A DNA stretch of 64,000 bases from Schmidtea polychroa (taxonomy: Eukaryota): positions 208,258,001 through 208,322,000 of the forward strand of contig CM097885.1 in NCBI GenBank assembly GCA_044892525.1, in the 5' to 3' direction. A program made the translations under genes and the position numbers. The stretch's first letter is position 1, and each line of letters starts with the position of its first letter. The notes under the pieces are model-generated. The model saw only the letters and a program-made list of their open reading frames with translations. It did no database searches and was not told the DNA's origin. Of the stretch, positions 12,857 through 57,230 are shown one piece after another.

Positions 12857-12998
12857 GATGTAAGTCCTTCTATCGGCAATCTAGAACCCGAAAGGAGAAT
12901 ACCATGATGAGTATTCTTAACACAGGGGCTCGCCTGCTCATGAATTCCAACCCATGTGTACATTACCAACATGATCGATATCATGGGTGCACATGTGG
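12857..12998 (+). ncRNA. Conserved structured non-coding module, copy A (candidate cis-acting RNA)
   Basis: Core CATGTGTAC-ATTACCAA-CATGAT(CGAT)ATCATG-G-GTGCACATG at 12953-12995; five homologues in the window with compensatory changes. Confidence 0.7.
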
Positions 12999-13129
12999 AA
13001 GTAAAGACAATAATCATAATGGGCGTTTAGGAAGGAGTCCTTCTGAACAGTTATCATTGACCCTAACGACCACCATCACGACACATCCCTAAGCGCCCAA
13101 AAATTTGATTGCAATTAAATAAAATTATT

Positions 13130-13345
13130 CTGTGCTGGGTTTCGATTTATTTGGTTGAATAAGAACACGAGGAGTCAGAGATCCGACTTTAAAATAAAAA
13201 AACCAACAAAACTTTGGTCATTGATTGTTTTGTGTTGAGTGATATTTTGTGATTCAATATACATTGGGTGGTTTGTTGTTTCGTTATTTACAATTAAAGG
13301 GACACGTGGAGTCAGAGAGTACCGAATCAAATTAATAAAAACAAA
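13130..13345 (+). mobile_element. Two successive LTR-like 3' ends
   Basis: GAACACGAGGAGTCAGA..CCGACTTT..AACCAACA (ends 13208), then GGACACGTGGAGTCAGA at ~13300. Confidence 0.65.
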
Positions 13346-14902
13346 CAAATTAACAAAAAATTATTACACAGCATTTTCATTAATGTTTCTTCAAAGTCGC
13401 CTAAAATTGGCATTTTTACCAATTTTATCAGTTGATTTTGGTAGGAGTTGATTACGCTGATAAAAGTGGGTAATGGAATATTGAAAAATTGAAAAAGTCG
13501 ACAAATTATCGAATTAAAATTTGAAAATCGGGTCAGATGCAAATGAGATGATGGGAAAGATCATGGCAAGAACGGACTCATCGGAATATGTTCAGAAAGT
13601 GTCGAAATACAAGAAAACGTTCAAAAAAAGCAAATCGTTAATTAATTAATTAATGAAAACCCGAGTAAGTAAACAGAAAGAAAAGTAAACAAAGTGGGTT
13701 CTGGAAAATTATTATCATGACAACATGAGTAATGGGAAAACGAGGAAAAGGCAAATACTTATTAATGAAAAAATAATAGATATAATCAATATATCGCAAA
13801 CAGACATGGTGGAACCAGATTGGTCCTTACATGTCTAGGGGACAGATTTCAAATGTGCCATTTTAAGGATGCGGGCACAATCATCCGGGTTCCAAATCTT
13901 GTCTTTCATGTGAAAAAACCCCGATGATTCTTGTAGGTTTTCCGCGATCCTTTGATGATTCTTTCGATCATTTTCTTTTATGTATCTATGTACTCTGCGA
14001 ACTTGAATCCCAACTTTCTGAGTATATTGTTGTTATCCTTCATCCAAGTTCCCAGAGAGCAGACAATGAATGTTTTAACAAACTACACATAGAAAAAACA
14101 AATAAGGACTCTATTATAGGAAATATGGACGAATTTGAAGTTCTAACAAAAATCAAGAAACACGTATATCAAAAAATAATCGTTGGATTTAACATCAATG
14201 AAAATTGAAAATATTAGTTTAGATGATGTATTGGGAATAAGAGAAATGGCAAATAATAAAAAGGCCTTTGTGAAAAACGTTTTAGAAGATAAAATAAAAA
14301 TATCAAATTTCGCATTTTAAGTTATAAAATTCAAAAGCAACTTGAAAAGAAACAAGAAACCGATATTCTGCTTTAACCTGAACCATCCGGTGTACAAGAC
14401 ACTTGTATAATAGTCAGTATCTTATGTTAAAAGATGAGCAAGGGTTAAAAATCCTAAAATTGAAGTACTATGTAATTGGATACAAAAAGTACAGTCTGTA
14501 AAGCCAGGATAAATATAAATGTGAAACAATAATACCGAGAAGCTGTGAGCTATCTAAAAATAGATGCGATATTGCATTTAACTTTGAAAATAATATTTGG
14601 TGACATATTATCTTTTAATTTGTCATTTTGTTATTATATTTAATTATTTTTCATATTCATCTTTGGTTTCTTAAATCCTCCCAAAAAATAAAATAAATAA
14701 ATAATTATGATTAATTAATTAAACCCCCTAGGGGCTAAAAATAATATTACACTTTAGGGTTTAATGTAAATATTGTAAATTATAAATTGGTTTCATTTCA
14801 CAGAAGATATTTGCATAAAAATCACTGAGAGACAGTGTCTTTGTGGATAAGTGAGGAAAACACTCGAACTAATCTATCAATAATTAATGTTTTGCCACAT
14901 TA

Positions 14903-14911
14903 AATAATAAC

Positions 14912-14995
<84 letters not shown>

Positions 14996-15011
14996 TGGTA
15001 ATAATAATAAT
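14903..15011. repeat. (AAT)n microsatellite
   Basis: Direct sequence. Confidence 0.98.
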
Positions 15012-15081
15012 AAATCAATTCACCAAATTGTAAGAAATTCATCATATTACAGGGTATTTGATAAATATATATAATCATTCC

Positions 15082-15085
<4 letters not shown>

Positions 15086-15166
<81 letters not shown>
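15086..15166. repeat. (AT)n microsatellite
   Basis: Direct sequence. Confidence 0.98.
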
Positions 15167-15168
<2 letters not shown>

Positions 15169-15303
15169 CATTATATAAATAAATATAATCAGTTCATTAA
15201 TTTATATGAAATTTATTTTCAGACACAATTAAAATTTATCATATAGCGACATAACAATATCCTGCCAAAACGATTAAAATTTTTTTTTGAACAAAATCCA
15301 AAA

Positions 15304-15640
15304 ATGAAACAAAGAAAAACAAGAAATCAAATGACACAGGAAAAGTTGGGTATAATTGATCGGCTTTCATCTCAAGGAAGCACAGCTCGGGAAATAGCAC
15401 ACGCTACAGGGTTTTCCAGGCCCTGTATTTATAAAAGATTGCAGGAAATACAGGAAACTGGTAATGTTACAGTTCAAAAACCGGGGAGAAAACGAATAAA
15501 CCAAACCGATCGCACTTCCTTTGTCTCAGAAATCGTACAGAACGATAATAGCTTGACTCTAACGGGGATTAAGGAGGTTCTGAATGAAAATTAAATAGTT
15601 TTATCCAAACCCTCCGTTTGCAGACTTTTAAAATCGACAC
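15304..15640 (+). mobile_element. Tc1/IS630-like transposase N-terminal fragment
   Basis: HTH (GSTAREIAHATGFSRPCIYKRL), KPGRKR linker, second HTH (DNSLTLTGIKEVL*..LSKPSVCRLLK). No DDE domain remains. Confidence 0.8.
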
Positions 15641-16129: not shown

Positions 16130-16590
16130 ATTGAAACTTCATACAATGTGATACAATGTAAGATCGTGACTCACAATTTATGAGTACTTGAGACGCTTGC
16201 ACTTTGTTTTGAGTTTAATACTAATAAGATTGGTCTAAGTGCTTCCGCTTTAAAGCTGCACTTGAATTATTTTCAGTTTTGTATTTACTTAACCCTCTCC
16301 GTATATTTGTCGAATATATTCGACATTAAAGCAAGATGTCACTTCCAGTTTCATAGGCCATTGCAAAAGTACATCGTTTTCACCGCGCATTATGAAAAAG
16401 AAAACAGAAAGATGTGTCCCTTTTCCAGCTTTGAATCCATCGGGATGAAGCTGAAGGCACATTTTGTAACCGTTTTTGTGGGAATAGAACGGGTCACTAT
16501 AAATATCAGCATTATTTTTTACAAGGAGAGGGTTAATTCACTTTAAAAATACTTTCGAAGTGTGAATATCAAATATTGAACCAGGCGGAG
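16130..16590 (-). pseudogene. TRAF: TRAF-type MATH (TRAF-C) domain fragment, missed by the ORF track
   Basis: Minus-strand translation 16510->16292: ADIYSDPFYSHKNGYKMCLQLHPDGFKAGKGTHLSVFFFIMRGENDVLLQWPMKLEVT, the canonical TRAF-C signature. Weaker traces lie on both sides. Confidence 0.92.
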
Positions 16591-18919
16591 TGCTAAAGTG
16601 TATTATATTATATTTGGATTATAAAGGTAAATTTTAATAATACTATCATTATTACATATAAAGAAATAATTTTAGATTGTTTTAAATTAAAGACGTTCAA
16701 AAGAATATTGATAAATGGTATGAATTTCACGAATAAAAAACATCTAAAATAAAAAGACCTTCAAAAATAGTAGATTGTGAAACCACATAATTATTAATTA
16801 ATAAGTAATAATTAAAGATGTGATTTGAGCTATAAAAATTAATGCATCAATTCTATACATGTAGGTTGCCCAGGGTGGTACTGACTTTGCAAGGTGCACC
16901 GGGATGATTTGAAAAAAAAGAAAAGCAGTATTTATTCAACATCGCAACTTTATTACACAACATTATAAGTTAAGTTACATTATTAAATTTTTGGTAAATT
17001 CAGTACTACCCTTACAAATTTCTTTAATCAATTCTTCATTCTCTATGACCATTAGCAAATCTTTGTTTTCATTCATTTCCATTTATTTTCATGTGAAAAA
17101 GAAAGTCAATTACGCATCATACCATCCGCTCTATTATAAACTTTTGAACTATGGAAAAACTTCGTTTTAGGTTGAACTAGATGATGAAATAAAAACTCTG
17201 ACGGATTTAACGGTTTTGAAAATAAATTAAGACTAAATTTAGTTCTATTTTCTTCATTATATATATTAACAGTTTTAATATTTAATTAACAGTTTCTGTT
17301 TCACTGTGATCGGTTACTATTTCAAGTTAACAATTTACAGCTTTTTTTCAATAATAGAAACATCAACATTTTCCATATCTTCATCATTATTTTGAATTTG
17401 AAGTAGTTCTATGTGTTCATAAGATCTGACTTCATCTACAGATTCAGACGATGACATACTTAACTCATCATGAAGAACGTTAGCACAGGTGGAAAGTAAC
17501 CCGGTTACCATATTTTTACCACACCGAACAGGGACGTCTAGCAACCCTAGTACAGGGTATTAATGAACACAAGGAGGAGTCTGTAGCTATATCTAAAAGT
17601 TGAGGGAGTAAATATTATGCCTTCGAATTTCTTGAATGCATTAATTCTTTACTCATTAAAAATTTTGTAAATGAATTTTAAAAATCAACTTCCGACACTA
17701 AAAATTTATGAAAGAACAGACATTTCTGTGCAATAACTATTAATTTTATATTTGACATTTTGTATGAAAAATGAAGTATTTAGACAGTGCATTTTCTTTG
17801 AAAAAAAATAAAATCTTGATATTAAAAAATGGTAATGTTATGGAGTAATTTTTATGTTAGAACGATAAAATGGAGTGGCAGAAAATTTCAAAAAAGAACA
17901 ATCACATCTTACGGAACAACTTTGAGCGAGAAGACTTCGGTTTAGATGACACAGGAAACAATTTGCAAATATTGTTTACAAATTCTAAATAATTCCCAGT
18001 ATCGTGTGGCATTATTAGCACTTTATGATATATTATCTATATAAATATTTATCTATATATTTCTTGGATTAACAAGGTACTGCCATAATTTCATTCAAGA
18101 CTATGCATAGGATCACTAATGATAGAATTAACATAGGGAGTTAAAAAAGAGTAAGTAAGGAGGTGTAATATTACAAAATATTGATAGCAAAAAATTAAAC
18201 GAAAAAATAATTAGAATAAATAACATTTGATCAGCTAAAAGAAAAATTAATAACAGTGAAAATATTAAAACTTTAAAAGAAAATTTATTGTTATAACATA
18301 CGTCAGTTGGGAAGTCATAGGAGTTTTATGACAAGATGAAGAAAAGTGTAAAAATTAAATAATGGAACAGGCGAGTAAAACATTAAAAACATATTCGACA
18401 AAAAAGTGCTATTCCATTGTTTTTGCATTAAACCATTTCAAACCATATCTTTAATTGATAATTAAACTATTAGATGATCAATGAAAACATAAAGATGCTG
18501 CAAGCAGATTCTTTTGATGAACAGCGAAAATAGAATACATGCATATGAAAATCATGTACAAACCTGGTAAAAATATATAAAAAAGTTGGTACATTATAAC
18601 AAATATCTGAGCTATATTAACCGAATTAATTTACGTACATGAAATATATATTACTCACTCAGTCACTCACTGATTCTGTTACACTCAATGCTTACTATGA
18701 TTATTTTAAAAAATTATAATTATNNNNNNNNNNNNNNNNNNNNNNNNNNNNNNNNNNNNNNNNNNNNNNNNNNNNNNNNNNNNNNNNNNNNNNNNNNNNN
18801 NNNNNNNNNNNNNNNNNNNNNNNNNNNNNNNNNNNNNNNNNNNNNNNNNNNNNNNNNNNNNNNCAGAATTGCCTTAATTATTATTTTTAATTTAAAAGTC
18901 TGAAATTATTGAAATTCGA

Positions 18920-32111: not shown

Positions 32112-33155
32112 CACGGGTTCCCAACCGGGGGTCTATGGACCCCATAGGGGTACGTGGAGCACTCCTATGGGGTACGAGAAGCGCGGCCGGTAAGGATTTT
32201 TGTCTCGAATTTTTATTGATAATATTTCATTGTTTTAAAATTTAGTAACAAACAAAAATCGCAATTTTTTTGAACACGGTTCGGTTTTTTCAAAGTAAAT
32301 TTCCTAAAACTAAATACAATAACAAATATGTACATATGGATTTCTTATTTTTGAAATAATAAATAAGTCGTTATAATATATTAATTATCAAATTGATATT
32401 GTTTTTACTAAAACGTGTACAAAAAATAAATATCTATAACGGGTTTCAATTTATTTGGGTAGTTACAATAAATAAACCATTGCATATTTAATTGTCTTAG
32501 TTTTTAGAAATAATTATTTTTTATTATCGACAGCTAACCCATACTGTCACAATGTCAAAGAAGCGTTGTTATCAGGACTCATATATTCAATTCGGTTTCA
32601 CTTTCTTAGTTGACAAAGATGGATTGGAAAGGCCACAATGCATACTTTGCTCGAAAGTACTTAGTAATGGTTATATGAAACCATCCAAACTTAAGGAACA
32701 TCTACAAGCAGTCCATCCAAACAACGTTAATGACACAGAATCTTTATTCAAAATTAAGAGAGCCCGATTTGAAACAAGCACAAAGCTCACCAATCACGGA
32801 TTTCTTCCCGAGAAAAAACCAGCTTTAGAAGCAAGTTATCGTGTGGCATTGAGGATTGCGAAAGATAAAAAACCTCATGCAATCGCGGAAACTTTGATTA
32901 AACCATGTGCGATGGAAATGGCCGAAATTATGTGTGATAAGGACGCAAAACTTAAAATATCACAAATACCACTATCAAACAACACAATTCACGATCGAAT
33001 TAAAGACATGTCTTATAGCAGATTGTAGAACAAATAAAAGAAAGTTCAACAAAAATTGGATTGCAATTGGATGAATCCACTGATGTTTCTAACTGTGCTC
33101 AACTTCTTGTTTTTGTTAAATATGTGTATAGAAACGAAATCAAAGAGGATTTTCT
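32112..33155 (+). mobile_element. Buster/Charlie-type hAT, left end plus truncated transposase
   Basis: TIR CACGGGTTCCCAACC preceded by TGATAGAT (central TA, Buster target consensus). BED finger RPQCILCSKVLSNGYMKPSKLKEHL, ASYRVALRIAKDKKPHAIAETLIKP, PLSNNTI, LQLDESTDVSNCAQLLVFV. Truncated where module B begins. Confidence 0.93.
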
Positions 33156-33373
33156 TTGAACCCAAACTGCGAGTTTACTAAGAGTAGTCCTAAGGTAGGG
33201 GCTCACCTGTTAGTAAATTCCGACCTATGTGCGCAGTACCAACGTGTGACATGGCCACGGGCACACATAAGGGAAATCAGCTAAGGTCATCTTGGATATC
33301 CAGGGAACCACACGCTGAGCAGACGGGGACAGTTTTATCTTATTTTAATTTTCTTCCTTCCCGGGTATCCAAC
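33155..33373 (+). ncRNA. Conserved structured module, copy B, with CCAACA terminus
   Basis: Core CCTATGTGCGC-AGTACCAA-CGTG..CACG-G-GCACACATAAGG at 33224-33272; upstream GAGTAG..GGGGCTCACCTG; ends TATCCAACA. Confidence 0.65.
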
Positions 33374-36120: not shown

Positions 36121-37957
36121 TGTTGGTTACTTAGGGGTGTGTCATTTTAAATACGTTAGGGGTAATCATAGGTATTCACTAGACTCTTTCCTAAGCACCT
36201 CCATGACTATTGTACTTTAAACCATTTGTTTACCCATGGCGACGATCATGTTGGTACTGTACACAAAGGCGAAAAAACAATGAGCAGGTGAGCTCTATTG
36301 CTAAAACTACTCCCCATTGTATTTTCTCTTCGGGTTCAAAACGGCCGATAGAAGATCTTAAGTCATTAGTCATTTTCTATTTCTACTTTCCTATTTTATT
36401 CAACTATGGTCCTAATTTCAATGTTTCCTATTGTTCTTTTTTAAAATTTTGTCCAGGGATGAGCCCTTATTTTTCTGTCATAAATAATTATGTGTTTTCT
36501 ATAATACTTGTCGATAAATTATTTTCTATAAATGTCGTTCCATATTTTCGAAGGTTCTTGTGAAAAATGTAACCAAGTTCTTTTAAAATTTTGAGTAGAT
36601 GTCTGCCCTTATTCCCAAGTAAATAAACATGTTTCCACACTTCTCATAAAAATTTGAGCAGGGATCTGTCTGTATTTCTAATCCTGAACAATCTTAACAA
36701 TTTGTGGATTCTATAAGATTACCTAAACCTACTTTATCTACCGACAACTGGTCCTAACTATCCTATTATTACTCCTAACTCAGTAGTATCTGTGAAAAGG
36801 TGACTAAACCGTCTGCTAATAATTTGCAAAATTACCTATCTACCACTGGTCTTTCCACCCTTCACGGTTCACTCGAAAACCACCGGTACAAGTACCAACC
36901 ATTTCCGAACGACCGTGCCAGACGAATTGACCATATTACTATATTTTATAAATTATCCAATGATCAAATAATTCTAAACATAAACAAACAACAAGAATTA
37001 ATGAAACAAATTCAATTAAAAATTTTATTAATTCATAAAATTATATAACATTAGACTTAACAACAATAGAAATAAATACAATACTAATATCAACGAAAAT
37101 TAACTTCATTTTAAAATAACATTAGACTTAACAAAATTACATTACACATACAAAAAAATCAAATTTACCTTACCGCGATAGCATACACCAAAAATTGAGA
37201 GCTCCTGATATAGTCTGGTAAATTTCTGATTGAACAAGTTTAATCAGTTGAACAAGTGAAATTTCACTCAGTATTTATACTGATTGAATTGTACGCCTAC
37301 GCATTCTATGCTGCTATATCCAATTAGAATGCGAGGCAATTCTGATTAATTTTTGCATGCATGCGTGAATGTGTGCAATTGTTTATTTTTTAATTTAATC
37401 AATTTAATTAATCAAAATTATATTTTTTACTAATTTTTAAGATTTATTTTTATAATTCTATAATTTAAATAGTTTTTGCTAATTTTAATTTAGTTTTACA
37501 AGTTTTTATAATTTAAATAAGTTTAGTTAACTTTATTTTAGTTTCATTGATTTAAACAATCTGGTTTTATAAATTTTATAATTCATCTAATTTTTCTACT
37601 TTTACTCTACTTTTTATTATTTTATCAGTTTACTAGATATTTTATTTTAAATTTTATATTTATTTATTTAACAATTTTTCATATTATTAATTAATTTATT
37701 ACCCATTATTTTATTTATTATTATTTTATTTTTTTTGTTGTTAGCTATTCCGAATGCGATATTTCTCCTAACTGTGTCAGTGATCGTGACCTTTTTTTTG
37801 CGTTCCTTTATTTTATTACCCGGTCTTATTTATCATCAATGTGTTATGTACTTTAATTTGTATTGATTGGTGTTCTAATTTAACTTGGTGCGATTTTTAT
37901 GTTATATATTTTTGATTCATTAAAACAAGCTCTCAATTCTTTGGTTCTAGCCCAACA
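36121..37957 (-). mobile_element. 1.84-kb TGTTGG...CCAACA-bounded cassette (promoter, donor, decayed ORF, structured module)
   Basis: Plus-strand TGTTGG at 36121 and CCCAACA ending 37957. On the minus strand: A-rich tract, CTAATTGG and TATAAA at ~37325-37270, GTAAG donor at ~37170, broken ORF ~36960-36400, then module F. No TSD. Confidence 0.55.
36222..36364 (-). ncRNA. Conserved structured module, copy F
   Basis: Minus-strand core TTTGTGTAC-AGTACCAA-CATG(ATCGTCGC)CATG-G-GTAAACAAA (36267->36225); upstream CTTCTATCGG..GAGTAG..GAGCTCACCTGCTC. Confidence 0.7.
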
Positions 37958-37959
37958 AT

Positions 37960-41300: not shown

Positions 41301-42229
41301 TTAAAATATTAGATAAAGGAAAAAATAATCAGACAATAATCCTAAATTTAGATATAATATATAAATAAATTATTAATAATATTATTTTGGTTTAGTTTTT
41401 GTTTAGTTATTTGGCAGACTTTTCAAAAATCCTCTAAGATAACTTTTTGATAAATTGTTTTCAATTTCACATTTTCACTTATATTTTGTTTATTCGATAG
41501 TTAATATTCCTTCAATGCGTATATCAGTTTTTATTATTCAACGATGAACGAATTGGATGAACACAATTTTGAAATGATGAAGAAAGTGCAAATAACACAT
41601 CGTGCATAAGCGCAAGATTAAGAAAATGATTTTGAAGAAATGCGTTATATAAGTTAATTGTACAAACATTATCTTTTTGATCTTTTCTTATTATTACTAC
41701 ACAACTGAAAATGTAGACAAACAAAAGTTAAATTTTTTTATTTGTTCGTTAAGATACTTTAATATTTTTTTCGAGTTCCTTTTAATTTATTTGTAATTGG
41801 CTTAAAAGTGAGTACAAGTTATACATGAAAATATTGAAATTATTTAATCTTTGGATTTCAGAAATATCTGAAATTTATTCAAGAAACAAGATGTCATTTT
41901 TTTAATTTAGATCTAGGAAAATGGGTTTATGGCTTGACTATGCAGTTGGACTTCAACCCGGCGCGCACCAGGGATCTCGTGGGCTTGAGCCACCAGGACC
42001 ATAAAAAATTATTAAATTTATTTTGACGTATGCCAAATTTTAATGAGTGAAATTACCTTAATTATTAACTAGAAACGATTAACTACAAAAGGGTTTACTA
42101 AGTCCTCAGCAAAAGATTTGATAAGTGTATTTGACTGTGTAAAATAAGCGGCACCTTTTGCAGTAAATACAAAGGATTTAACTCCCTTCCTGTCCAAAAT
42201 GAATATAAAAATACTGGTAAGTTACAGGT

Positions 42230-42430
42230 AGTCAAACATTTTACCCTTTCGTTCTGTTTCCAGCGTAACTCAGAATACAATGATAATCCTACCAATTGAT
42301 ACCCGATGAGTGATCATCGTTGGTAATGTATCAAGTGGGTGAGTGCTCGCAAAAAGTAAGCGCACTACTTGCGATATAATTGTCGGGCACTCTTTGGGTC
42401 CACGGACAATAGATAGAAGATATACGTCCG
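42230..42430 (-). ncRNA. Conserved structured module, copy E
   Basis: Minus-strand core TTGATAC-ATTACCAA-CGATGA(TCAC)TCATCG-G-GTATCAA (42334->42296); flanks align with 49205-49400. Confidence 0.7.
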
Positions 42431-42561: not shown

Positions 42562-42768
42562 TTATTGTTTGTGAAGGGGTTCGTGTTGCGACGATCCAGG
42601 TTGGACCGGGCGCTCTTGGTCAGCTAACTGTAGTCGCTTTAGCCGTTCTCTTCCATCTCGGCCTAGTCTCTTGCGCTTTGGTTTGGCTGGCTTGTTTGCA
42701 TGAACCTCGGCCAGCTCCGCGGCTACAGGTCGAAACGCTGCAGTGACGTGATCATTTGGGTTAGTCAT
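42562..42768 (-). pseudogene. Family-X-related C-terminal fragment
   Basis: RPVAAELAEV..KPKRKRLGRDGRERLKRLQLA..GSSQ aligns with RPLSVELAAI..KPKRKRLGRNIREKLKKARLA..GSSQ of 48533-49003. The coiled-coil part is missing. Confidence 0.7.
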
Positions 42769-43770
42769 TGTATTCTCTTTCGATTAATAGAGTCACTTGA
42801 TATTTGGTATATTTTAGAGCAAATTAGTAGATGCATGAGAGCAAAAAAAATGTAATTAATATTGCATTTCATTACAAATCTTATTTATCAACATTAATAT
42901 CACATTTTATTACAGGTCTTATTCGTTAATTGGTATAGTTTTACTACCACTGTATTAGAATTTTTTAGGGCATCCGATCTTGTAATTAATCATTTGTTTT
43001 AATTAGTGAAAATTATATCTAACTATACAATCAAATACCGCCAAATTTAAATATATTTTATGGCGAAATAAACATTGTTTCATTGTTATATTTTAAAATG
43101 GTAATTATGAATATATGCGGGGTAAATTGTAATATTAATTTGTAAAATAACCTCAGTATTATTTTAGGAAGACATATATTCGTCCAGTAACTAAAAGTAA
43201 ATGGAAGTGAAATGGACAGATTCAGCGGAGATGCCGAACGCAATCATCAGTCATGCCTCTAGACGTACCGTCAGCTCACTAGTGATTGGAGGTGCCTATG
43301 GTCTGCAATTACATTTTGATTAATAAAACTATTTAGTACGAAGGTTTTAGATCTCTCGTAAGAAATCGGCTACAGAGATTTCGCACATCCAACCGGATTA
43401 TGGAACGATATTCAATGGCGAAACTCGACTTATTTCATTGATCGAAACTATTGAACATCTTTTATTAGTTGCTATAATAAATAGATTTATTCCTCATTTT
43501 TATGTTTTAGTTTATCATATCGGTGTGTTGTTTTTATTCCAATTATAATTAAAATATTTAACACAATAATTAAAACTTCGCTTTAACATATGATATTTCA
43601 CGTTATTCAATCCGATTTTTTTCCCTTTTCGATATTTTCATGTTGTGCGAGATGCTGATCATCATTGTCAGGTTGGAACTTTGACTTGGTTCTGGATCTC
43701 TATTTACGAGTGAACTATGCAATTATATATACAGCTGGATCATATTCTTGTATAATTAGGGTGTTCTTAA

Positions 43771-46710: not shown

Positions 46711-47960
46711 TATTTGATATAAATTATAAATATAATCTATAAATAGGTATAAATACGAATTATAGATAGTTATATTTAATACTTGGCTATAAATATACAA
46801 AGTACAAATAGCGATAATAACCTGCAACGAAGCATACGACGTTAGAATTAGGGCTATAAAAATCTTGCTAGAGTCATGAATTACAAATTGAAATAATTAT
46901 ATTCATTATTATAACCATCATCATTAGTGTTATTATTACCATTATTATTATTTGTTATTATTATTACTATTATTACTACTATTGTTATCATGGTATTATT
47001 ATTATTATTATTATTGTTACAATTATTATTGTTATCTCTATCAGCAATTATTGCTCACCAAAATCAATATTCCAATCGAAATATCGATTTAAGATTTGCC
47101 CCAAGACAAATTTAGTATCAACCCTTTAGATCCAATAAGAAGGAGCGAAATCCTTAAAAGTTATTTTTAGTAACCCCCCTCTAGAAAATGTTAACACTAT
47201 CTAAGTAAATTGGAGATAGGGGCGGAAGTATATTATCAAAACCTATGAGATACCTATCAAAATCATTAATGAATCGTAATCATATCATTTGTTTACTAGA
47301 GAATCAAACCACTATTACTAAAATACCAAAGATTTCTTTATTATGAATAATAAATTATAAATACAAAACTACTACGAATTCCAAGAGAATTCCTAACGAG
47401 GAGTCGTACGACGATCTCCCAAAGCTAAACTCGTCTATCTCCAGTCAAGAAAAATCATCACCCAGCATTCCTAGAAATGAAAATTTGCGGTAAATAAACA
47501 AATTACCCGAGCTGCTTAAAAGTCGATTGTACCACTCATGACGAGCACGATCAAGGAGAGGTAAGTAAACGAGAACTAAGCTCGCCACTAATACCTATCA
47601 CCCGATGTGCCCGAATTCAGTAGTAATTTACTAATTCCCGGGAATTCGACAAAATTTAACATAAAGATTTTTAAATTACCATCTCGTGGTAAATAAATGA
47701 TAAATAGTGAAATAGTAAGTTTAAACAAATATGACAGTGAGGGAATTTTTTGTTTGTCGAGGTATTCAACATTAATGCTTAATCTAGATAAATGTTTTTT
47801 TTTTATTTTTAATTGATTAAGAATTTTATCGATAAATTAAGTAAAAAATTTCATGTTAAAAGTAGTTACATTACTTATAGTAACTTTGGTAGTTAAAGTA
47901 TTATTTATTTTGGGTATATTTTCCACATTGGTTATGATCGTTAATATTTGTACTACAGAT

Positions 47961-48326
47961 ATGTCCCAATCAGATGAGTTCAGCGATGAAGAAAACCACC
48001 GACAGACGATCACCCGCCTCCGGACCCGTTACATCTGGCACCATATACATCGGTGGGGTCAGGGAAGGGACCTAGATTGTACGGAACGAGTAATCCGGAC
48101 AGGCCCCGAAGTAGATGCCCCGGCATGGGTGAAGGTGGAACCGGAGAATAACCGGCTGCAGGAGGCCCGAGACCAAGCGGCCTGGGAGGTGGAAGCCGCT
48201 CAGATGCGACTCAGGAAGATCGAGTTACAAATCCGGGCGAAAAGAGAAGGAGTGCCCGTGGAGGAGCTAGAGGAGGCCATAGTATTCCCACGAAAGAGAG
48301 GGAGGCCCCGCAAATGCCGAGGGTGA
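47961..48326 (+). CDS. 121-aa protein with coiled coil and C-terminal AT-hook
   Basis: ATG directly after an acceptor-like TACTACAG; GC-rich island; ends PRKRGRPRKCRG (AT-hook core RGRP). Confidence 0.6.
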   Translation: MSQSDEFSDEENHRQTITRLRTRYIWHHIHRWGQGRDLDCTERVIRTGPEVDAPAWVKVEPENNRLQEARDQAAWEVEAAQMRLRKIELQIRAKREGVPVEELEEAIVFPRKRGRPRKCRG

Positions 48327-48532
48327 TCAAGGACCAACTATTGACTTACTATAATTGTGTGTATTGTGACAAATAATCAAAATTGGTTGAGGATCATGTG
48401 TTACTCTTTTTAACAAAATATCTTTTGAATAAATTTCTTATTTAATAGCTCAAGTATCGTGATGCATGATATTGACCTTATTATATTGAACAAGGGGAAT
48501 GCTGCAAGCCAGTAATCGTTGTAATTTATCTA

Positions 48533-49003
48533 GTGATCAAACTATGCGAAAATCTACGAAAGGACAGAGAAGAAGCCCAAAAACAGGCCGAGGAGCTCCG
48601 TATACGAGTGGACAAACTCAAGGGACGGTGCCGTGAACTAGAAAGCACCTGGTTTAGTCCTCAAGATATGAGGAAGAAGTTGACACCGGTCCTCCAATTG
48701 CAGACTCAAAACGCGCAGGATCAGATGGAGATCCGGGCCTTGAAACTCCAACTCCGCGCGTTGGAAACCGAACGCAATGAACAAGCGGTTCACGGAGCCA
48801 CCATAAGTCAAATCCGGCCGTTGTCCGTGGAGTTGGCAGCCATTTACCCTCCGGCCGCGAAAGATAAGCCCAAGAGGAAGCGGCTGGGGAGAAACATTCG
48901 TGAGAAATTAAAGAAGGCCAGACTGGCCGAATACGAAAAGCAAGTGGGCTCCTCGCAAATATCTACGACGGGACTAATCGGCCCCACCAACCGGCCAAGT
49001 TGA
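48533..49003 (+). CDS. Family-X divergent member (start codon uncertain, GTG)
   Basis: Coiled coil RIRVDKLKGRCRELESTWFSPQDMRKKL (compare IDELEGTLFSPAQMKE) and basic KPKRKRLGR; 156 codons open. Confidence 0.65.
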   Translation: MIKLCENLRKDREEAQKQAEELRIRVDKLKGRCRELESTWFSPQDMRKKLTPVLQLQTQNAQDQMEIRALKLQLRALETERNEQAVHGATISQIRPLSVELAAIYPPAAKDKPKRKRLGRNIREKLKKARLAEYEKQVGSSQISTTGLIGPTNRPS

Positions 49004-49204: not shown

Positions 49205-49340
49205 CACAAACCTTCTAACGGTAGTCCGTGAACCCATGGAGTGCTCGACGATTATAGTGCCTCGAGGCGCTCACTTTTCGCGAGCACTCAACCCTTGGTA
49301 CAGGACCAACGTTGATTACTCAACGGGTACCAAGCGGAAA
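49205..49340 (+). ncRNA. Conserved structured module, copy D
   Basis: Perfect core CTTGGTAC-AGGACCAA-CGTTGA(TTAC)TCAACG-G-GTACCAAG at 49294-49334. Confidence 0.72.
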
Positions 49341-49961
49341 CACTAACGTTGTATTTTGGGTTACGCTGGCAACAGCACTAAAGAACAAAATATTTGATCA
49401 TCAGTAACCCACCAATAAGATAATGAATAAAATGACGAAAAACGCAACAAATAACGAGGAATTTAAGAAACAAATAAAAAATATAAAAAAAATAAAGGAA
49501 AATAAGGAAAACAACCAAAGAAATAAGAAAAACAAATTAATTTAAAAATTAAAGCGGTACTCGATTTTGATTGGTCCGCATAAACGAAAAATGCATATAT
49601 AAGTAAACAGTAAACTCATTATAGTTACTGTTAAACCAAACCATTTACAGGTAAGAAATAATGACAAATAGTTACTGTTAAACCAAACCATTTACAGGTA
49701 CTCGACTATCCAGACAATCACCGGACATTCAGAAAACAGACGACTACTAGGAACAACTATAACTTCGATCTAACACTATAACCGATTTAATTAGCTTTTC
49801 GGCTCAGCCTTTTTGAATCACCGATTTACGAACGATAAGTAAGAATGTGTTTTTATTGTGAAATTGCGTAAATGTTTTTCGAAGTTAAAAATATTTTTAG
49901 TATATCAATTTAACAGATTTTAATAAACCTTCTTCATTCGATCTCACTTTTTAATAATAAT

Positions 49962-51017
49962 TGTTGGGTTTTGGATTATTTCAAGTCGGTTCTCTCTGAC
50001 TCCTGTGTCCTTTAAATCAAAACAATGAACGACCCAACGTATATTGAAACAACAGGTTCACAATTTATTATCACGCTACAATTACCAATCAAAGTTTTAT
50101 ACGATTCTCTGCTCGGCGTTAATGTTTTGCATACAAATAATATTCACCTTTTTGTCCTTTCGATTCTCTTGACTCTCGTTTTCCTCGGTTTCTGTTTGGT
50201 TTGATTCCTTTTCACCTTTTCGTATTCTTAATTCTATTTCTTCTCCCTACTTCCCTAAATTCGTTTTTACCTCTCGACTATTCTCGATTCTTCTTACCCT
50301 ACCTGAGGCAAAATGCCGATTTTCTCTGATTTTCCCTTTGCTTATATACTCCTCGAAATCCGGATGACAAATGGTTATTGCCGAGCCAATCTTTCGTTTG
50401 ACATTTTCTCCTACGTGTTTGCTTCGGCTGTCACCCATAATGGTCCAACGAATCCAGATAATTAATGGCCCTACCAGTCTTCCTACGCGCGCTATCTTCT
50501 CCTTACTCTTTTCCCATTAATCTTTGTGTCAAGCTAATGGGCCCAAATCTTCCTTTTGTTTGCCTTTCTTCTTGTTTACCCAGCTCGGGTTTCCTTTATC
50601 TCTCGGGTTCTCCATTGGCTCGAGTTTCCCATTAGCTCGGGTTTTCCATTAGCCAATTAATTAATTAATTAACGTTTTCTGTTTCCATACGTTTGAATGT
50701 TTTTCGACTCTTCCTAACCCTTTTCTGATAAATCCCTAACCATCATCTTGTTGACCATTAGCTAATCTATACCTGTCCCGTTTTTCCCATTCGATTTCGA
50801 TGATTTTTCCCTTTATTGATTTTTCTCGGATTTCCGGATTCTCGCCTTTCGTAATTGCTTTTGGCATTTTCTAATACTGTTTCCATCACACTTTCCTTTA
50901 CTATTGATTCTGTGCACGATCCCGCTTTTATTTGCCTTTTTTCCTCGCTTACTTTCCATTTGAATTATTATTCTAAATTTTATTTAAATTTTCAATTTTA
51001 ATTTACGGACCTCAACA
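49962..51017 (-). mobile_element. Complete solo LTR-like insertion (1056 bp) with 4-bp TSD TAAT
   Basis: Plus-strand TGTTGGG at 49962 and CCTCAACA ending 51017; TAAT at 49958-49961 and 51018-51021. Carries the family GAGTCAGA 3' motif and AATGGGAAACCCGAGC-type repeats. Confidence 0.8.
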
Positions 51018-51064
51018 TAATGATTTTATGATCAAATTCAAATACTAATGGTAGATGAATATTT

Positions 51065-51561
51065 ATGATATGTCTTTATATTCACTCCGCCGAATATATA
51101 GGGTCGTTTAAACGAAAAATTGATACGCTGGAGGGAACATGGTTTACTCCTGCCAGTATGAAGGAGGCTCGCATGAAAATTCTCCGTCTTGAAAATTGCC
51201 GCGACAGCTTGTTGCAAGAGAATCTGAGCCAGAGATTCACCATCAAGGCACAATCGGCTGCCCTTCATCGCATATACTCAGACGCTGAACTAAAAGCGAG
51301 AGTAGCAGAATACCCAATAACGGACAAGGGAAATCTTTTCCCACTCATCATGATTTAACTCTCCTAAGGCCCGATCCATCTCTTTGTTGCAGTGCACACG
51401 GCCCAACTCCGGCATCTCCAATTCTCACCGACATCGTTAAGGCCTCTACGTCAACAACTGTACCGCCAGTCACTACTTCATCAAATCCGTCAACGTCGCA
51501 GCCAGTCGTTTTGCCTGGAAAACAGAAGAGGAAGAAACGGCTAACACGGGCCGAGAAAATC
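51065..51561 (+). pseudogene. Family-X copy, frameshifted (~51340) and 3'-truncated
   Basis: KRKIDTLEGTWFTPASMKEARMKILRLENCRD..RFTIKAQSAALHRIY..NLFP (frameshift) HHD..KRKKRLTRAEK, then replaced by AT-rich DNA. Confidence 0.8.
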
Positions 51562-52086
51562 ATAAAAGTTAAAATTTATAAAATTATATTCCGATATGAG
51601 GATAGAAATAGTATATATTAATATAATTGTTATTGCATAAGTAATTTGGGGAATCAACAGAAATGTTTCGAGTTATCCTTTTAATTATAAGATGGTGGAA
51701 AGACATCAATTATCATTATAAATTATATACAAATAATCGTCAAAAGTATGATATATGATTAGATAATCGTAAAATTAATCCAGTAGGTGGGAAAATTTGA
51801 GTTTGGTATATGGTTGGCAACTTTTAAAGTTAGGGTTTATAATTTAGATAAAACATAGAATTATAACTCGCTTTTGAATGTATGGGTGGAAAAGGGTTTA
51901 CTATATAAAATTTTAAATAATAAGTTTTATTAATTATGTAAATGAAGAAATTAAATTTCATTGACATTAGATGAATGAATTTGGATAAGATGTAGATTAT
52001 AGATCCTGAGTTGCGTATATGCATTTCGAAATTTTTGCCGAAAATTATTAACATGATTGTCCTTCTAGTTCGTGAATTTTTCATTT

Positions 52087-54079: not shown

Positions 54080-54900
54080 AAATGAATATAGGAAAGTAGA
54101 AACGAAGGGGTGTAGTGGCATCTGATTTATTGGAATAGTAGTAGTGGTTCACAGTGACTGAGCGAGTCTAAATTCTTCACATCTACAACAGCTCTGTAGT
54201 TCTCGTATTTGCGAGATTCATTATCACCATCAACCATAGGTTCCAGGCGGTTTAATTTCTTTAGCAGGACAAGCATCATCTATCAACCAATTATTTTCGT
54301 CTTTTCGAAATAGTCACTCGCACTCGATTTTAACAACGAATCCAGTTTTACAGCACTTCCTCTGACAGTAGGATAAGCATATAGTAGAACATAATACTAT
54401 CGAAAATTGTAATTGAAGAATAAGCCGATACATGTAAAAGATTTTTATTCAAGTACAAAAGGAAAACTATTTTTGAAATACCTGTATATGAGCCAATGCA
54501 TGAAAAATTTAAATTATTTAACTTCCAGAAATAGTCGCCATCAACGAATTGAGATAGGTAGAGACATCCAGAATAGTTGAAATAAACTTCCACGAAGCGA
54601 TATATCCAACAATAGTGATGAGCGAGAATTGATGCTTAGATTTTTCATGTTAGAGAGGACCAGCATAGTGTAATCTAGCATCAGCAAAACAAATCCAGAA
54701 TGCTAATCGGGTTAAAATGTAGTAGAGCAACTATACTCACACACGCGTAAACACATGTAGTACGAGTTCAGTAGCAGATCCATCTGGGATACTCATCGGC
54801 GATAACACAACGATTTTTCTACTCAATCATGTGGGAATTTTCCATGTGACACACTCATTAGGTTATTTCCATGATTTGACTCAGCAGTAGGTAAATTCGC
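54080..54900 (-). pseudogene. Degenerate tandem MATH-like ORF (tentative)
   Basis: CVTWKIP..KIVVLSP..LVLHVF, then DGDYFWKLNNLNF..KIVFLLYLNKNLLHVSAY resemble two MATH starts; several stops. Confidence 0.35.
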
Positions 54901-56079
54901 ATTAAGCAATTAGCATGAGAAGTTCCACCCAGTGTGTAACATCTAGTCTCAGCCTATAGATAAGAATCATCAGCCAGAGAGAAATTTACACTGGTTACTG
55001 ATAACCGATAGCGTGCGGTTGTATATTTTAATTCCAAATTTTGGGAACTTTTAAATTTAATACGTATGAATGATGATTAATTAAATTTAATTAACCAGCG
55101 GAATCTGCCAAACCTACATATTAAATAATTTTCTTTTGTAAAGTAGTCCTTTATTTTTGTTAGAGTTCTTGAATGCGATTTAACAATTTTCAAGGAAAGT
55201 TTAATTATTAATAATTTCACATAAATATAGAGCTTCCATTTTCTAACAATAATGCATTACCTTCATTAGGCAAAGTTATATTGTCGGTTGATTTTTGTAA
55301 GTAATTAATCCAAACGGACTAAAGATCGATCATATGTGGGGGGGGGGGGGGAGATATGAAAATTTTCATGTAGGCACCCGTAATGCTGATTTTGTCATCT
55401 GCCATAACGATAGAAATTTTTACATTCGTGAGTTAATAGCGGATAAGTGTAGTGAAATGGCAGCTGACCTGAGACTGCTACTCCCAAGCTGTGTTTTTCT
55501 GTCATATCGCTGAGATAGAGATTGGCTCATACTATCATGAAAATCAACTAGACCGATGTGTTGAGGTACAGAATTCACAAAGTTCATTCATCAAAAAATC
55601 ACCAACTAATTATCTTGAATACTTAGAATAATTTTAAATTTAGATTTTACAATTAACTCCAGTAATTTCGTTCAGTAAACGTAATAGATAATTATTCAAT
55701 TTTTCATTATGTCATGACAAGTAATACAACGACATTCTTATTAAAGAGTATTTTCACATTTTTGTTTTACTATTGTTTTAAATATTATAAATCTTACAAC
55801 CAGACCGTATAGAAACTTACAGGGAGAAGGGTTAAAGTTAGTAAAGGTATCCCATGGAGAGTTTTCAGTTAAATCAAATTGCATTCGCCAAGTCCATATT
55901 ATTTGCCGAATTAACTAGTATTTGTCAAGTTAGCATTATTTAGCTAAATAAGTCTTCTGTAAATGATCATAACTAGGTTGTAAAGGGAGTTCTTTCTGTT
56001 TGACAGTCGAGTATCCACGAGGGGTCAGTTAATCGTGTTCAATGTATTTTCAAATCTTGCATGTACCTTTATAGCGATC

Positions 56080-56829
56080 ATGATACCAACTGCCAAGCCC
56101 GCGTTACGTCCGTGCTTCTCCTGCTCGGATAAGAATGCGATTATAAAGGATCTGCAGGCCCAGATCGGGCGATACAAAAAGAAGATAGATGAGTTGGAGG
56201 GCACCTTGTTCAGCCCCGCTCAGATGAAGGAGACCCAGAAAAAGCTGTATCGCAGCGAACACTGTCGTGACGCTCTCATCTCGGAGAGTCGTTCACAAAG
56301 GAGCTTGATAAAGGAGCAGTCCGAAGCACTGCAAAAGGTTTATTTACAGGCAGCGACCACCAGAAAGATTGTGAACATTCCCATTCGCGAAGCCGATGAG
56401 CTCTTTCCGGCGCACCATGATACTTCTGCCGAATTGCCGTCTTCTTCCAAGAAATCTTGCCGACAGTGTGTAGAAACGGAACTCTCACCAAAAGACCCAG
56501 ATCTCATCATCACGGGAACGAGCAGAGTACAAAGTGAAAACGCACCTACTGATACTGTGCCACAGAGAAATCAATCAACGTCGAAACCAAAGCGTAAGCA
56601 GTTATCGCGGGCAGAGCGTAAGAGACGACAGCGCGAACGAGCGAACATCCAGCAAAACACCACCGTGATGGAACCCCCAACTCCCCGAAACGTCAACCCC
56701 GCAGTGATAGATCTAACCACCGGAATCCCAGCACGGATTATCTCGGCTGCTGGCGTAGTATGGGAGGAAAATGACTCCGAATTTTTCGACATCGACGAAT
56801 TATTACGGGATACCGAGTGGGAAAAGTGA
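56080..56829 (+). CDS. Family-X intact member, 249 aa, unknown function
   Basis: Uninterrupted GC-rich ORF in AT-rich surroundings. RPCFSCSDKNA, coiled coil, LEGTLFSP..MKE, LFPAHH, KPKRKQLSRAERKRR, acidic tail FFDIDELLRDTEWEK. Two close and two distant paralogues in the window. Confidence 0.8.
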   Translation: MIPTAKPALRPCFSCSDKNAIIKDLQAQIGRYKKKIDELEGTLFSPAQMKETQKKLYRSEHCRDALISESRSQRSLIKEQSEALQKVYLQAATTRKIVNIPIREADELFPAHHDTSAELPSSSKKSCRQCVETELSPKDPDLIITGTSRVQSENAPTDTVPQRNQSTSKPKRKQLSRAERKRRQRERANIQQNTTVMEPPTPRNVNPAVIDLTTGIPARIISAAGVVWEENDSEFFDIDELLRDTEWEK

Positions 56830-57085
56830 GAAACTCTAGCAGAGAGTTTAGTGACTATCACCTCTATCATTAGGATTGTATGTGATTCTCTGTCGTACCA
56901 TCTATCTGTACATATGGATCTTCTGTTGTTTTAAGAATGAAATACATTTATTCCTGTTCCTTTTATTTATTTCTGTTAGTGAGGGTTAGACATAAAAATA
57001 TATACCCAAATGTTCTGAAGTTGGATGAGAGTCAGCCAATTTGCATTCGATTTACCGAAAATGAGAGATTTGGATAATTCGAAAC

Positions 57086-57230
57086 GACGTAAGACCTTCT
57101 ATCGGCCGTCTAGTGCGGGAAGTCGAGACCTCAGTAAGGAGTAGTTTTAAGGCAGAAGCTCACCTGCTTACTGGCGTCTCGCCGGCATAGTGCAGTATCA
57201 ACGTGAAGCAGTTCACGGGCCCTATGTTGG
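57086..57230 (+). ncRNA. Conserved structured module, copy C
   Basis: Core CCGGCATAGTGC-AGTATCAA-CGTGAA(GCAG)TTCACG-G-GCCCTATGTTGG at 57182-57230, with two G-U pairs. Confidence 0.7.

Follow-up and report, generated by a model that had tools for sequence, protein, structure and literature searches.

A conserved structured domain of about 215 nt in the 3′ part of a small repeat family from Schmidtea polychroa

Six copies of a bulged hairpin lie in a stretch of 64,000 nt of Schmidtea polychroa DNA (the window). What kind of signal do these hairpins form, and to what do they belong? We found that the hairpin makes up only the middle third of a larger conserved module (about 215 nt), which contains at least two further covarying helices. 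This module forms the 3′ portion of a repeated unit of about 1–1.4 kb with one coiled-coil/basic ORF. It therefore belongs to a mobile-element-like transcript as a cis element and is not a free-standing RNA gene. The repeat family is small and undescribed, and six decayed copies end in the structured domain.

The core hairpin and the domain around it

The letters reported for the cores by the sequence-only reading were present in all six copies, namely A (12953..12995, plus strand), B (33224..33272, plus), C (36225..36267, minus), D (42296..42334, minus), E (49294..49334, plus) and F (57182..57230, plus). The common fold that had been proposed, in the order P1, 8-nt bulge, P2, single G and P1′, is the minimum-energy fold of A, D, E and F, but B and C need mismatches to adopt it: P2 of B is imperfect, and C has one mismatch in P1 and one in P2. 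The bulge is ATTACCAA in A and D, AGTACCAA in B and C, AGGACCAA in E and AGTATCAA in F. It is indeed near-invariant, with four variants in six copies, a C after each and GGG on the 3′ side. Pairing was counted in alignment A2, a sequence-only MAFFT alignment with 15 pairs and 90 pair cells. Standard pairs fill 92.2% of the cells, and 10 of the 15 pairs have changed on both sides; the stems are rewritten yet paired, as had been stated. The observed percentage of pairing, number of both-side-changed pairs and covariation score were matched by none of 500 shuffles, in a control that ignores the relatedness of the copies. When the 3′ partners were slid by 1–3 columns, pairing fell to 26–47%. The six module copies all come from a single window and fall into two subfamilies ({A, B, C, F} and {D, E}), so independent compensatory events are few.

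A lean of G-U pairs to the sense strand had also been claimed. The lean is there (8 G-U versus 2 A-C cells on the ORF-sense strand) but it is weak, and the strand is better argued from the constant orientation of the hairpin to the ORF. The stems are compensated, the bulge is nearly fixed, and no Rfam match was obtained at any threshold tried. The core is therefore best read as a functional single-strand signal of a kind that has no name yet, and the sequence-only reading is supported on this point.

The covariance model R1 was scanned across the window. The six modules scored 140–191 bits and the next best site scored 15 bits. The modules are A (12863..13076, plus; 190.6 bits, alignments A1 and A2), B (33146..33358, plus; 140.6 bits), C (36146..36358, minus; 177.7 bits), D (42210..42423, minus; 175 bits), E (49208..49417, plus; 172.5 bits) and F (57092..57310, plus; 155.1 bits). 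D and E are 75% identical across 255 nt. Degenerate patterns of the conserved blocks matched five of the six copies, where shuffles expect none. Because stops fill every sense frame in five of the six copies, the module is non-coding. Nothing was found for it in viral, metagenome and prokaryote collections, and a search of IMG/VR by pattern plus covariance model gave no match. The module matches no catalogued RNA family and points to a working RNA signal.

Upstream of the core lies a longer helix, Pa, which has at least 10 bp and whose letters differ completely from copy to copy. Within Pa lie a conserved internal loop (GAGUA.. / GCUC.CCUG) and Pb, a hairpin of 6 bp. The inner part of Pa, the loop and Pb occupy 12901..12944 in A (plus; inner 8 bp of Pa), 33174..33217 in B (plus), 36277..36320 in C (minus), 42345..42387 in D (minus), 49244..49285 in E (plus) and 57131..57174 in F (plus). 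In a self-versus-cross test of Pa, the own 3′ strand was the best partner in 6 of 6 rows, and the mean energy was −13.2 kcal/mol for own pairs versus −4.8 kcal/mol for cross pairs. In displaced control segments, the own partner was best in 0–2 of 6 rows. For Pb, 34 of 36 cells were paired at fixed offsets from conserved anchors, with both-side changes at three of the six positions. Independent minimum-energy folds of B, C, E and F have this 5′-domain topology in common. These results show that the helices are kept by compensatory change and the loops by sequence.

Downstream of the core, A, D and E carry a 7-bp helix with ACCA directly after it, at or near the 3′ end; in B, C and F this feature has decayed or is missing. 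In A (13021..13075, plus), 6 of 7 positions are paired and 37 nt are enclosed. The helix encloses 39 nt in both D (42215..42271, minus) and E (49358..49414, plus), with a CUG-GAAA-CAG hairpin in D and a GCUG-GCAA-CAGC hairpin in E. Between A and E, four positions of the helix are changed on both sides. The helix of A was absent from the MAFFT-based consensus fold and was found by a custom script. The self-versus-cross test failed for the 3′ domain, the own partner being best in 2 of 6 rows. A tRNA-like cloverleaf or T-loop was not detected by ARAGORN, armless mitochondrial modes included. The multi-helix structure of the domain is well supported; its function we infer.

The repeat unit and its surroundings

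In A, D, E and F, the module lies 230–500 nt downstream of an ORF on the same strand. The ORF family encodes coiled-coil proteins of about 160–250 aa, which are rich in lysine and arginine. Its only intact member precedes module F (56080..56829, plus; 249 codons, ATG to stop). The ORF of unit E (48476..49003, plus) runs without interruption in one frame and lacks a canonical ATG start; two ENA metagenome contigs carry an intact 157-aa protein with 42% identity to it. That of unit A (11789..12547, plus) is broken into three frames by at least two frameshifts, and that of unit D (42562..42783, minus) is a C-terminal remnant of about 70 codons, the N-terminal part being missing. A seventh copy, G (51059..51621, plus), is truncated at both ends and split into two frames by at least one frameshift; no module lies downstream of it. 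One protein family, with common motifs, spans both subfamilies. The flanking ORFs have 20–48% amino-acid identity, though the module is still alignable as DNA. The protein model contains two long helices and a confidently predicted basic helix. We found no Pfam, PDB or fold relative of the ORF protein, no match among viral protein structures and families, and no detectable relation to known ORF1/Gag. Its homologs are only a few unannotated predicted proteins elsewhere. In P0006, from another genome, a complete hAT transposase and the coiled-coil domain are fused in one gene model.

The seven family copies span 45 kb in both orientations, and most are decayed or truncated amid other transposon debris. 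Several are cut short at the 5′ side. Alignment A8 and the translations show that unit B begins inside the module, without the CTTCTATCGG block, and directly abuts a hAT coding fragment; C has no family ORF detectable upstream by a local HMM scan; D keeps the C-terminus of the ORF only; and G lacks the first ~25 codons. The 3′ boundary of the unit is not settled: D/E similarity stops 3–4 nt past ACCA, whereas A/C similarity runs 25–60 nt further 3′, and A and F then have another short repeat. Neither target-site duplications nor poly(A) tails could be made out convincingly at the unit ends; B, C and E have exact 8-mers (n=3) at plausible ends, which is no more than chance would give in AT-rich DNA. 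No LTRs were found, and there are no terminal inverted repeats within copies or common to copies.

Two decayed hAT transposase fragments are neighbours of the family. The N-terminal half of a ZMYM1-like hAT transposase (10787..11720, plus), interrupted by three or more frame changes or stops and lacking its C-terminal half, lies directly upstream of unit A. A truncated N-terminal fragment with one frame change (32501..33156, plus) runs straight into module B. A further hAT copy, at about 22.2–24.5 kb, has no module. A retroposon origin of the units would leave unexplained both the two modules directly behind hAT fragments and the P0006-type hAT fusion. No reverse transcriptase (RT), integrase, endonuclease or Rep was found in window ORFs of at least 75 aa in any frame, or in pieces of 40–74 aa upstream of the modules. 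A flagged gap (18724-18863) lies in AT-rich surroundings, 5.6 kb past module A and 14.3 kb ahead of module B, and was reached by no module, family ORF or repeat alignment. The continuity of the sequence across it has no bearing on these results.

Possible roles of the domain

We propose, with a probability of roughly one half, that the module is the cis-acting 3′-terminal RNA domain of a short non-autonomous retroposon-like repeat and is recognised for copying. On this reading, the six hairpins are the middle helix of the multi-helix domain in the 3′ part of the sense transcript; the order is Pa enclosing its loop and Pb, then the bulged P1/P2, and then, in three copies, the 7-bp helix with ACCA. 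The unit encodes one helical coiled-coil protein with a lysine/arginine-rich helix, and no enzyme. The domain may be the cis signal by which the element RNA is recognised for copying, probably by an RT acting in trans from an autonomous partner; this model is likened to the "stringent" LINE 3′ tails and the R2 3′ UTR. Proteins would contact the RNA at the conserved bulge and at the internal loop, and the element's own basic protein may also bind there to form an RNP. The 5′-truncated copies with a common 3′ module fit copying that started at the 3′ end. Copying in trans by an RT partner is purely conjectural, because no RT-bearing partner with the same tail was found in the window.

Identical structural evidence would come from a real 3′ UTR structure that serves a post-transcriptional job (stability, localisation, translation control or poly(A)-less 3′-end formation) in a multi-copy, fast-evolving gene or repeat family and has no template-recognition role. 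Processing at the helix-plus-ACCA end is one example, and this end resembles an acceptor end usable by cellular tRNA-processing enzymes. The module also keeps a constant position after the stop codon, and no enzyme or partner element is seen. However, seven copies in 45 kb, in both orientations and decayed amid transposon debris, favour a mobile repeat over a gene family, and the ARAGORN result speaks against a tRNA-like end; we regard this explanation as unlikely. A total lack of function, with inverted repeats persisting by common descent or chance, is scarcely credible. Only six related copies are at hand and the shuffles ignore their relatedness, but most stem positions differ yet pair, the loops are the conserved part, and the Pa test (6 of 6 rows against 0–2 of 6) and the DNA-level alignability of the module beside such diverged ORFs had already disfavoured this explanation.

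The hAT fragments directly upstream of A and B on the same strand, the P0006 fusion and the 8-mers, which have the length of a hAT duplication, would suit a DNA-level signal. The module would then be a single-stranded bulged hairpin or a cruciform, used as the site of a transposase or rolling-circle enzyme and possibly subterminal in a composite hAT-type transposon carrying the coiled-coil gene. Both strands do fold with similar energies. Nevertheless, terminal inverted repeats and a Rep/helicase are lacking, one hAT copy has no module, and the 8-mers are within chance expectation. The bulged or mismatched long-range helices, the G-U excess and the strict ORF-sense orientation suit RNA better, and a DNA signal is improbable. 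We give equally little weight to the idea that the units arose as DNA copies from an RNA replicon (for example the 3′-coterminal messenger or a satellite of a host RNA virus), with the module as its 3′-terminal replication signal. It would account for the small units, the single basic, helical, nucleic-acid-binding-like protein without cellular relatives, the highly structured 3′ end, which in three copies closes with a helix and ACCA, and the common 3′ end of copies with truncated 5′ sides. Against it, the searches of viral proteins and IMG/VR gave no match, no polymerase gene is nearby, and several diverged lineages coexist as interspersed decayed copies, like a resident repeat family. Ribozymes are common in retroelement transcripts, and a compact fold of several helices, whose junctions hold invariant unpaired nucleotides, could belong to a new class of self-cleaving ribozyme that processes the element transcript. 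This is very improbable: Rfam ribozyme models gave no match, even when slices of 400 nt were scanned with E values up to 10 allowed, the sequences carry no cleavage-site mark, and the invariant bulge and asymmetric internal loop look more like protein-binding sites.

Comparison with known systems

3′ tRNA-like structures ending in CCA are known from plant RNA viruses (TLS) and fungal mitochondrial retroplasmids. Like these, A, D and E have a 7-bp terminal helix, one base and CCA, where D/E similarity ends; unlike these, the module has no detected cloverleaf or T-loop, and B, C and F have lost or never had the feature. Arginine-rich-motif proteins of the retroviral Rev/Tat type and the phage N/boxB type bind bulged or internal-loop RNA hairpins, and these systems regulate transcription or export, not copying. 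The modelled basic helix, encoded beside an RNA hairpin whose sole conserved part is an asymmetric bulge, may be compared with them by functional analogy only; no homology was found. HeT-A of Drosophila is an ORF1/Gag-only non-autonomous non-LTR element. Mammalian HAL1 is an ORF1-only non-autonomous LINE derivative (PMC5753468). Like both, the unit would combine one nucleic-acid-binding-type ORF with a 3′ UTR, lack an RT and be copied in trans. Unlike them, its ORF has no detectable LINE ORF1/Gag homology and no parent LINE is known, and the unit is far shorter than HeT-A.

In R2, target-primed reverse transcription starts with selective binding of the R2 protein to the structured 3′ UTR RNA (PMC11194090). 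Two features of R2 were not seen here, an RT/endonuclease encoded by the element itself and insertion in 28S rDNA, and Rfam scans gave no sequence or model similarity between the R2 3′ UTR and the module. The two are alike in being multi-stem 3′ UTR domains of about 200–250 nt, in which structure outweighs primary sequence and recognition draws on more than one stem-loop. In "stringent" LINEs of the L2 clade, such as zebrafish ZfL2-1 and ZfL2-2, the stem-loop of the 3′ tail is recognised by the element's ORF2 protein (PMC4176376). Unlike these tails, the domain described here is far larger (about 215 nt, at least four helices), its conserved unpaired part is an 8-nt bulge and not a hairpin loop, and no ORF2/RT in the unit or window and no terminal short repeats were seen. 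Like these tails, it is a structure at the 3′ end of the element sense RNA, whose stem is kept as structure and whose specific unpaired bases are kept as sequence; such a tail can be shared by non-autonomous elements and does not require poly(A).

Compensatory changes in the core and the 5′ domain

The modules A to F are six structured domains of about 215 nt (A, 12863..13076(+); B, 33146..33358(+); C, 36146..36358(-); D, 42210..42423(-); E, 49208..49417(+); F, 57092..57310(+)). They possess a multi-helix fold, which is maintained by compensatory change, and conserved unpaired bases. The evidence base for this structure is six copies, all from one window. Each module contains a central bulged hairpin (the core), and when the six cores were read again their letters and positions were identical to those quoted in the sequence-only reading (6/6). 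The fold proposed there was P1, an 8-nt bulge, P2, a single G and P1′. Minimum free energy folding gave this arrangement for A, D, E and F, whereas B and C adopt it only with mismatches. The stems had been described as re-lettered yet paired, and this is indeed the case: in a structure-blind MAFFT alignment, 92.2% of the pair cells are standard pairs and 10 of the 15 pairs are changed on both sides. The observed values were reached in none of 500 shuffles, and core pairing fell to 26-47% in a control in which the partners were slid by 1-3 columns. The unpaired parts are conserved as claimed: the bulge reads A[U/G][U/G]A[C/U]CAA, a C follows it, and GGG is the opposing sequence. It had also been argued that G-U pairs favor the strand of the upstream ORFs. 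The direction agrees (8 G-U versus 2 A-C), but the lean is weak.

The copies resemble each other as DNA only over the core, about 115 nt before it and 100-150 nt after it. Besides the core, alignment of the copies revealed the invariant blocks CUUCUAUCGG, GAGUAG, GCUCACCUG and a GGAA-type block. A covariance model of 217 positions gave 140-191 bits for the six copies and at most 15 bits for the rest of the window, and no seventh module was found when the window was scanned with this model. Independent minimum-energy folds of the 5′ parts of B, C, E and F have the same topology: within helix Pa (10-14 bp) lie a 1x1 mismatch, two pairs, a loop that is asymmetric (U opposite CAC/UAC) and hairpin Pb of 6-7 bp. 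The 5′ parts of A and D are compatible with this topology, with one mismatch apiece. Because Pa is differently spelled in each copy, it could not be lined up by sequence alignment, and a column-wise helix scan, run on the MAFFT alignment, broke down outside the core, where matching by sequence does not bring the helices into register. Therefore, we used an alignment-free own-partner test, in which pairing energies were computed between the 14-nt segment that precedes the loop in one copy and the 14-nt segments that follow it in all six copies. For Pa, every copy paired most stably with its own segment (6 of 6 rows; mean -13.2 versus -4.8 kcal/mol), and displaced control segments gave 0-2 of 6. 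The corresponding values for the core helices were 4/6 (P1) and 5/6 (P2). For Pb, which was examined at fixed offsets from conserved anchors, 34 of 36 cells are paired and both-sided changes occur at three positions. Additional pairings were considered and rejected: a bulge-flank pseudoknot, checked by eye, has its complement in D alone, and pairing of the CTTCTATCGG block with the 3′ GGAA block fits A only.

A further helix may be present on the 3′ side. In A (6/7 bp), D (7/7) and E (7/7), a 7-bp acceptor-like helix encloses 37-39 nt and is followed by ACCA. Four positions of this helix are changed on both sides between A and E, and D and E possess a GNRA-capped hairpin within it. The helix and ACCA were not seen in modules B, C and F, and the own-partner test did not support the 3′ domain (2/6). 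RNAalifold on the MAFFT alignment recovered the helix for D and E only. Therefore, we regard the 7-bp helix plus ACCA in A, D and E as tentative. Similarity between D and E stops about 85 nt past the core, and that between A and C extends 25-60 nt beyond this point. If the helix-plus-ACCA end were a true RNA terminus, it would be unusual for an animal nuclear repeat. ARAGORN found 0 tRNA or tmRNA genes in the window and 0 cloverleaf or armless folds in the six modules (standard, -mt and -mtmam modes).

The core had not been recognized as any named family, and Rfam agrees, with no match at gathering and no credible match at E up to 10. For the whole window there were 0 matches at gathering; relaxing the threshold to E = 10 gave only unrelated chance matches (11-26 bits), none of them on a module. 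The same threshold gave nothing credible for 400-nt slices of A and E. Known RNA classes (hammerhead, HDV-like, twister, pistol, hatchet, SECIS, snRNA/snoRNA, SRP/7SL and 5S) were rejected because no Rfam gathering score was reached. In IMG/VR, metagenome contigs and prokaryote genomes, degenerate block patterns matched by chance only and the covariance model rejected all of them. A protein-coding exon was likewise rejected: every sense frame of B to F contains 1-8 stops, and a stop-free sense frame is present in A only. Moreover, the lengths of the indels between copies of the module are not multiples of three.

The carrier repeat and its protein family

The module belongs to a small repeat unit, in which it is always in sense and toward the 3′ side. 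Upstream of modules A, D, E and F, one protein family is encoded on the same strand, and the ORF ends 230-500 nt before the core. Two motifs are common to the family: TWF(S/T)P lies within a coiled-coil stretch, and KRKRL.RAER marks a basic run. The ORF of F is intact (249 codons). That of A is read in three frames, so it contains at least two frameshifts, that of E is a single frame without a canonical ATG, and only about 70 C-terminal codons are left in D. A seventh copy of the ORF, G (51059..51621(+)), is truncated at both ends, contains at least one frameshift and has no module. No ORF was detectable in C, and the start of B lies inside the module. Taken together, these states form a series with a common 3′ module, in which the 5′ side is cut at differing points; B, C, D and G constitute the 5′-truncation series. 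Because the likeness between A and F begins about 70 nt before the ATG, a complete unit measures only about 1.3-1.4 kb. Another frame, of 161 codons (47841-48323(+)), lies immediately 5′ to unit E and contains a coiled-coil segment and an AT-hook-like KRGRPRK; it lacks a Pfam match, and there is no counterpart upstream of D.

The family protein belongs to no Pfam family, and a PDB sequence search gave nothing better than E = 0.11. Its AlphaFold model has a pair of long helices, a disordered segment and a basic helix predicted with confidence, and Foldseek searches of PDB and BFVD with this model gave no match with E <= 0.001. The F ORF had no match in a word-indexed protein search. When 1.84 billion representatives were searched with a profile, 17 proteins were retrieved, none of which is RT-bearing. 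Among the matches that were looked up, 14 with E <= 2e-4 either occur in UniParc only or come from short contigs (549-638 nt). The remaining three are P0005 and P0013, which are repeat-like multi-stretch matches, and P0015, which is a multi-stretch match too. Most looked-up matches are unannotated UniParc entries, often gene models fused with unrelated host exons, and several of the UniParc relatives have long arginine runs and a PPPY motif. Exact look-ups returned no source DNA for some profile matches, the F ORF, a 331-aa ORF and other window ORFs. An intact relative of 157 aa, accompanied by a near-identical cluster member, has 42% identity to the E ORF and is related to the D/E-type ORF. 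It is encoded on two low-coverage ENA metagenome contigs, L196 (638 nt, ERZ2271643) and L197 (549 nt, ERZ2270917). Both contigs end about 20 nt past its stop codon and are too short to include a module. A HAL1-type ORF1-only LINE derivative was rejected on homology, because the protein has no Pfam, PDB or Foldseek relative and no RT-bearing match is among the 17.

RVT, endonuclease, integrase and Rep were absent from 77 ORFs of >=75 aa and from 82 upstream pieces of 40-74 aa, and there is no RT-bearing partner with a module tail within the window. Neither LTRs nor poly(A) were found. Terminal inverted repeats are not shared between the copies and none is convincing. Exact 8-mers are present at B, C and E but not at A or F, and they have chance-level significance as duplications; target-site duplications are not demonstrable. 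A hAT terminal or subterminal region was rejected because the units have no shared or convincing inverted termini. A Helitron 3′ hairpin was also rejected: there is no Rep/helicase domain, and the hairpin is bulged, embedded in a larger fold and separated by at least about 85 nt from the inferred end, whereas a Helitron hairpin is short and lies about 10 nt from the 3′ end.

Neighboring repeats and genes in the window

The window is AT-rich (31% G+C), contains four assembly gaps and looks like eukaryotic transposon-rich DNA. The gap at 18724-18863 separates A from B; the surrounding DNA is AT-rich and non-coding, and the nearest module is 5.6 kb away. Modules, family ORFs and repeat alignments all stop short of it, and continuity across this gap has no bearing on the finding. 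The other gaps (6709-6854, 7535-7746 and 8210-8403) are clustered within 1.7 kb, where G+C is 20-22% and the assembly is fragmentary. Listed ORFs such as 7469-7819 and 8131-8427 are artefacts because they run through N.

At 10787-11720(+) and 32501-33156(+), immediately before unit A and truncated copy B, the N-terminal half of a ZMYM1-like hAT transposase (BED-type finger, DESTD motif) is present in decayed form. A gene model from another genome, P0006, which was a match of the protein search, combines the coiled-coil domain with a complete hAT transposase of the type found at A and B. This adjacency could be an insertion preference, a composite element or chance. The module as a general hAT companion was rejected, because hAT fragments adjoin only A and B; a hAT at about 22.2-24.5 kb and a DUF4371 fragment (40252-40875) have no module in sense downstream.

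A short repeat (about 135 nt; conserved core GGGACACGTGGAGTCAGAG) occurs at 4528-4836, 5639-5759, 13102-13363, 37975-38088(-), 49855-50150(-) and 57434-57606. Its 1.5 tandem units follow unit A directly, it recurs about 120 nt after module F, and the orientation is alike at both places. This repeat may represent a SINE-like or MITE-like element, a favored neighbor, or part of the unit's distal 3′ end. An open frame for a pogo-type DDE_1 transposase is present at 3263-4267(+) (E = 7e-35), and HTH and CENP-B-type DNA-binding matches were obtained among the window ORFs, as were RING and TRAF-type zinc-finger matches. A TRAF/meprin MATH-domain ORF (28502-29275(+)) and a MATH-like fragment (16292-16537(-)) are probably a TRAF-like host gene and a pseudogene fragment; a homology search with the MATH-domain ORF gave no match at 1e-10. 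The segments 61262-62404 and 62374-63513 form a 1.1-kb tandem duplication with 99% identity, and its relatives with 65-73% identity are at 894-2239 and 44492-45188. A perfect 20-nt inverted repeat (10237-10256 and 10457-10476), which starts with TTAA and has its arms 200 nt apart, looks like a small MITE.

Possible role of the module and comparison with known 3′ tails

We favor the explanation that the module is a cis-acting 3′-terminal RNA domain of a short non-autonomous retroposon-like repeat. The module would be a cis signal for recognition of the unit RNA and for copying from the 3′ end. Stringent LINE 3′ tails are a precedent for 3′-tail recognition in copying (PMC4176376), the R2 3′ UTR for a recognition RNA at the 3′ end (PMC11194090) and HAL1 for an ORF-only derivative without an enzyme (PMC5753468). 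As in stringent LINE tails and the R2 3′ UTR, the copying enzyme would be supplied in trans. Proteins would contact the conserved bulge and the internal loop, and the basic protein encoded by the unit may be a second ligand.

Several points count against the copying-signal reading. The window holds no partner, no poly(A) and no demonstrable target duplications, and the 3′ boundary is uncertain in the A/C subfamily. Nor does this reading explain the adjacency to hAT fragments. A rival explanation takes the module as a DNA-level signal of a composite hAT-type element, and the fragments beside A and B could be read in this way. Another rival is a post-transcriptional 3′-UTR element. A new ribozyme is a third: the maintained helices and conserved unpaired bases are compatible with it, and the ribozyme classes compared in Rfam gave no match. 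The module might also be the 3′ end of an integrated RNA replicon, for which the tentative ACCA end in A, D and E would be relevant. On a bolder reading, the units would be remnants of an undescribed animal element, that is, a minimal RNA replicon or retroposon of about 1-1.4 kb with one coiled-coil, Arg/Lys-rich RNA-binding protein and a 3′ "genomic tag" (multi-helix, with a protein-docking bulge and an acceptor-like helix plus CCA) where copying starts. We consider this reading improbable. The tRNA-like 3′-tag principle is found in plant RNA viruses and fungal retroplasmids, and such an element would extend it to animal nuclear repeats.

With the module as a 3′-terminal recognition domain, a structured 3′ cis-RNA in a mobile repeat is a known kind of thing; the module is new in its sequence, size, architecture and carrier. 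Structured 3′ tails determine which RNAs a retroelement enzyme copies. To our knowledge, only a handful of 3′ tails (R2 and a few L2-clade LINEs) are known in any detail. The module would be a large multi-helix tail with clear compensatory evolution, in an enzyme-less unit with an unannotated protein family. If a census of the source genome confirms this, the module would constitute a new Rfam-type family, a handle to find an autonomous partner that shares the tail, and a natural case of a protein reading a conserved bulge and internal loop. Unlike LINE 3′-tail and R2 RNAs, the module is not accompanied by an RT, either in its own unit or in a partner in the window. Like LINE 3′-tail and R2 3′-UTR RNAs, it has kept its structure by compensatory change and has kept specific unpaired bases.
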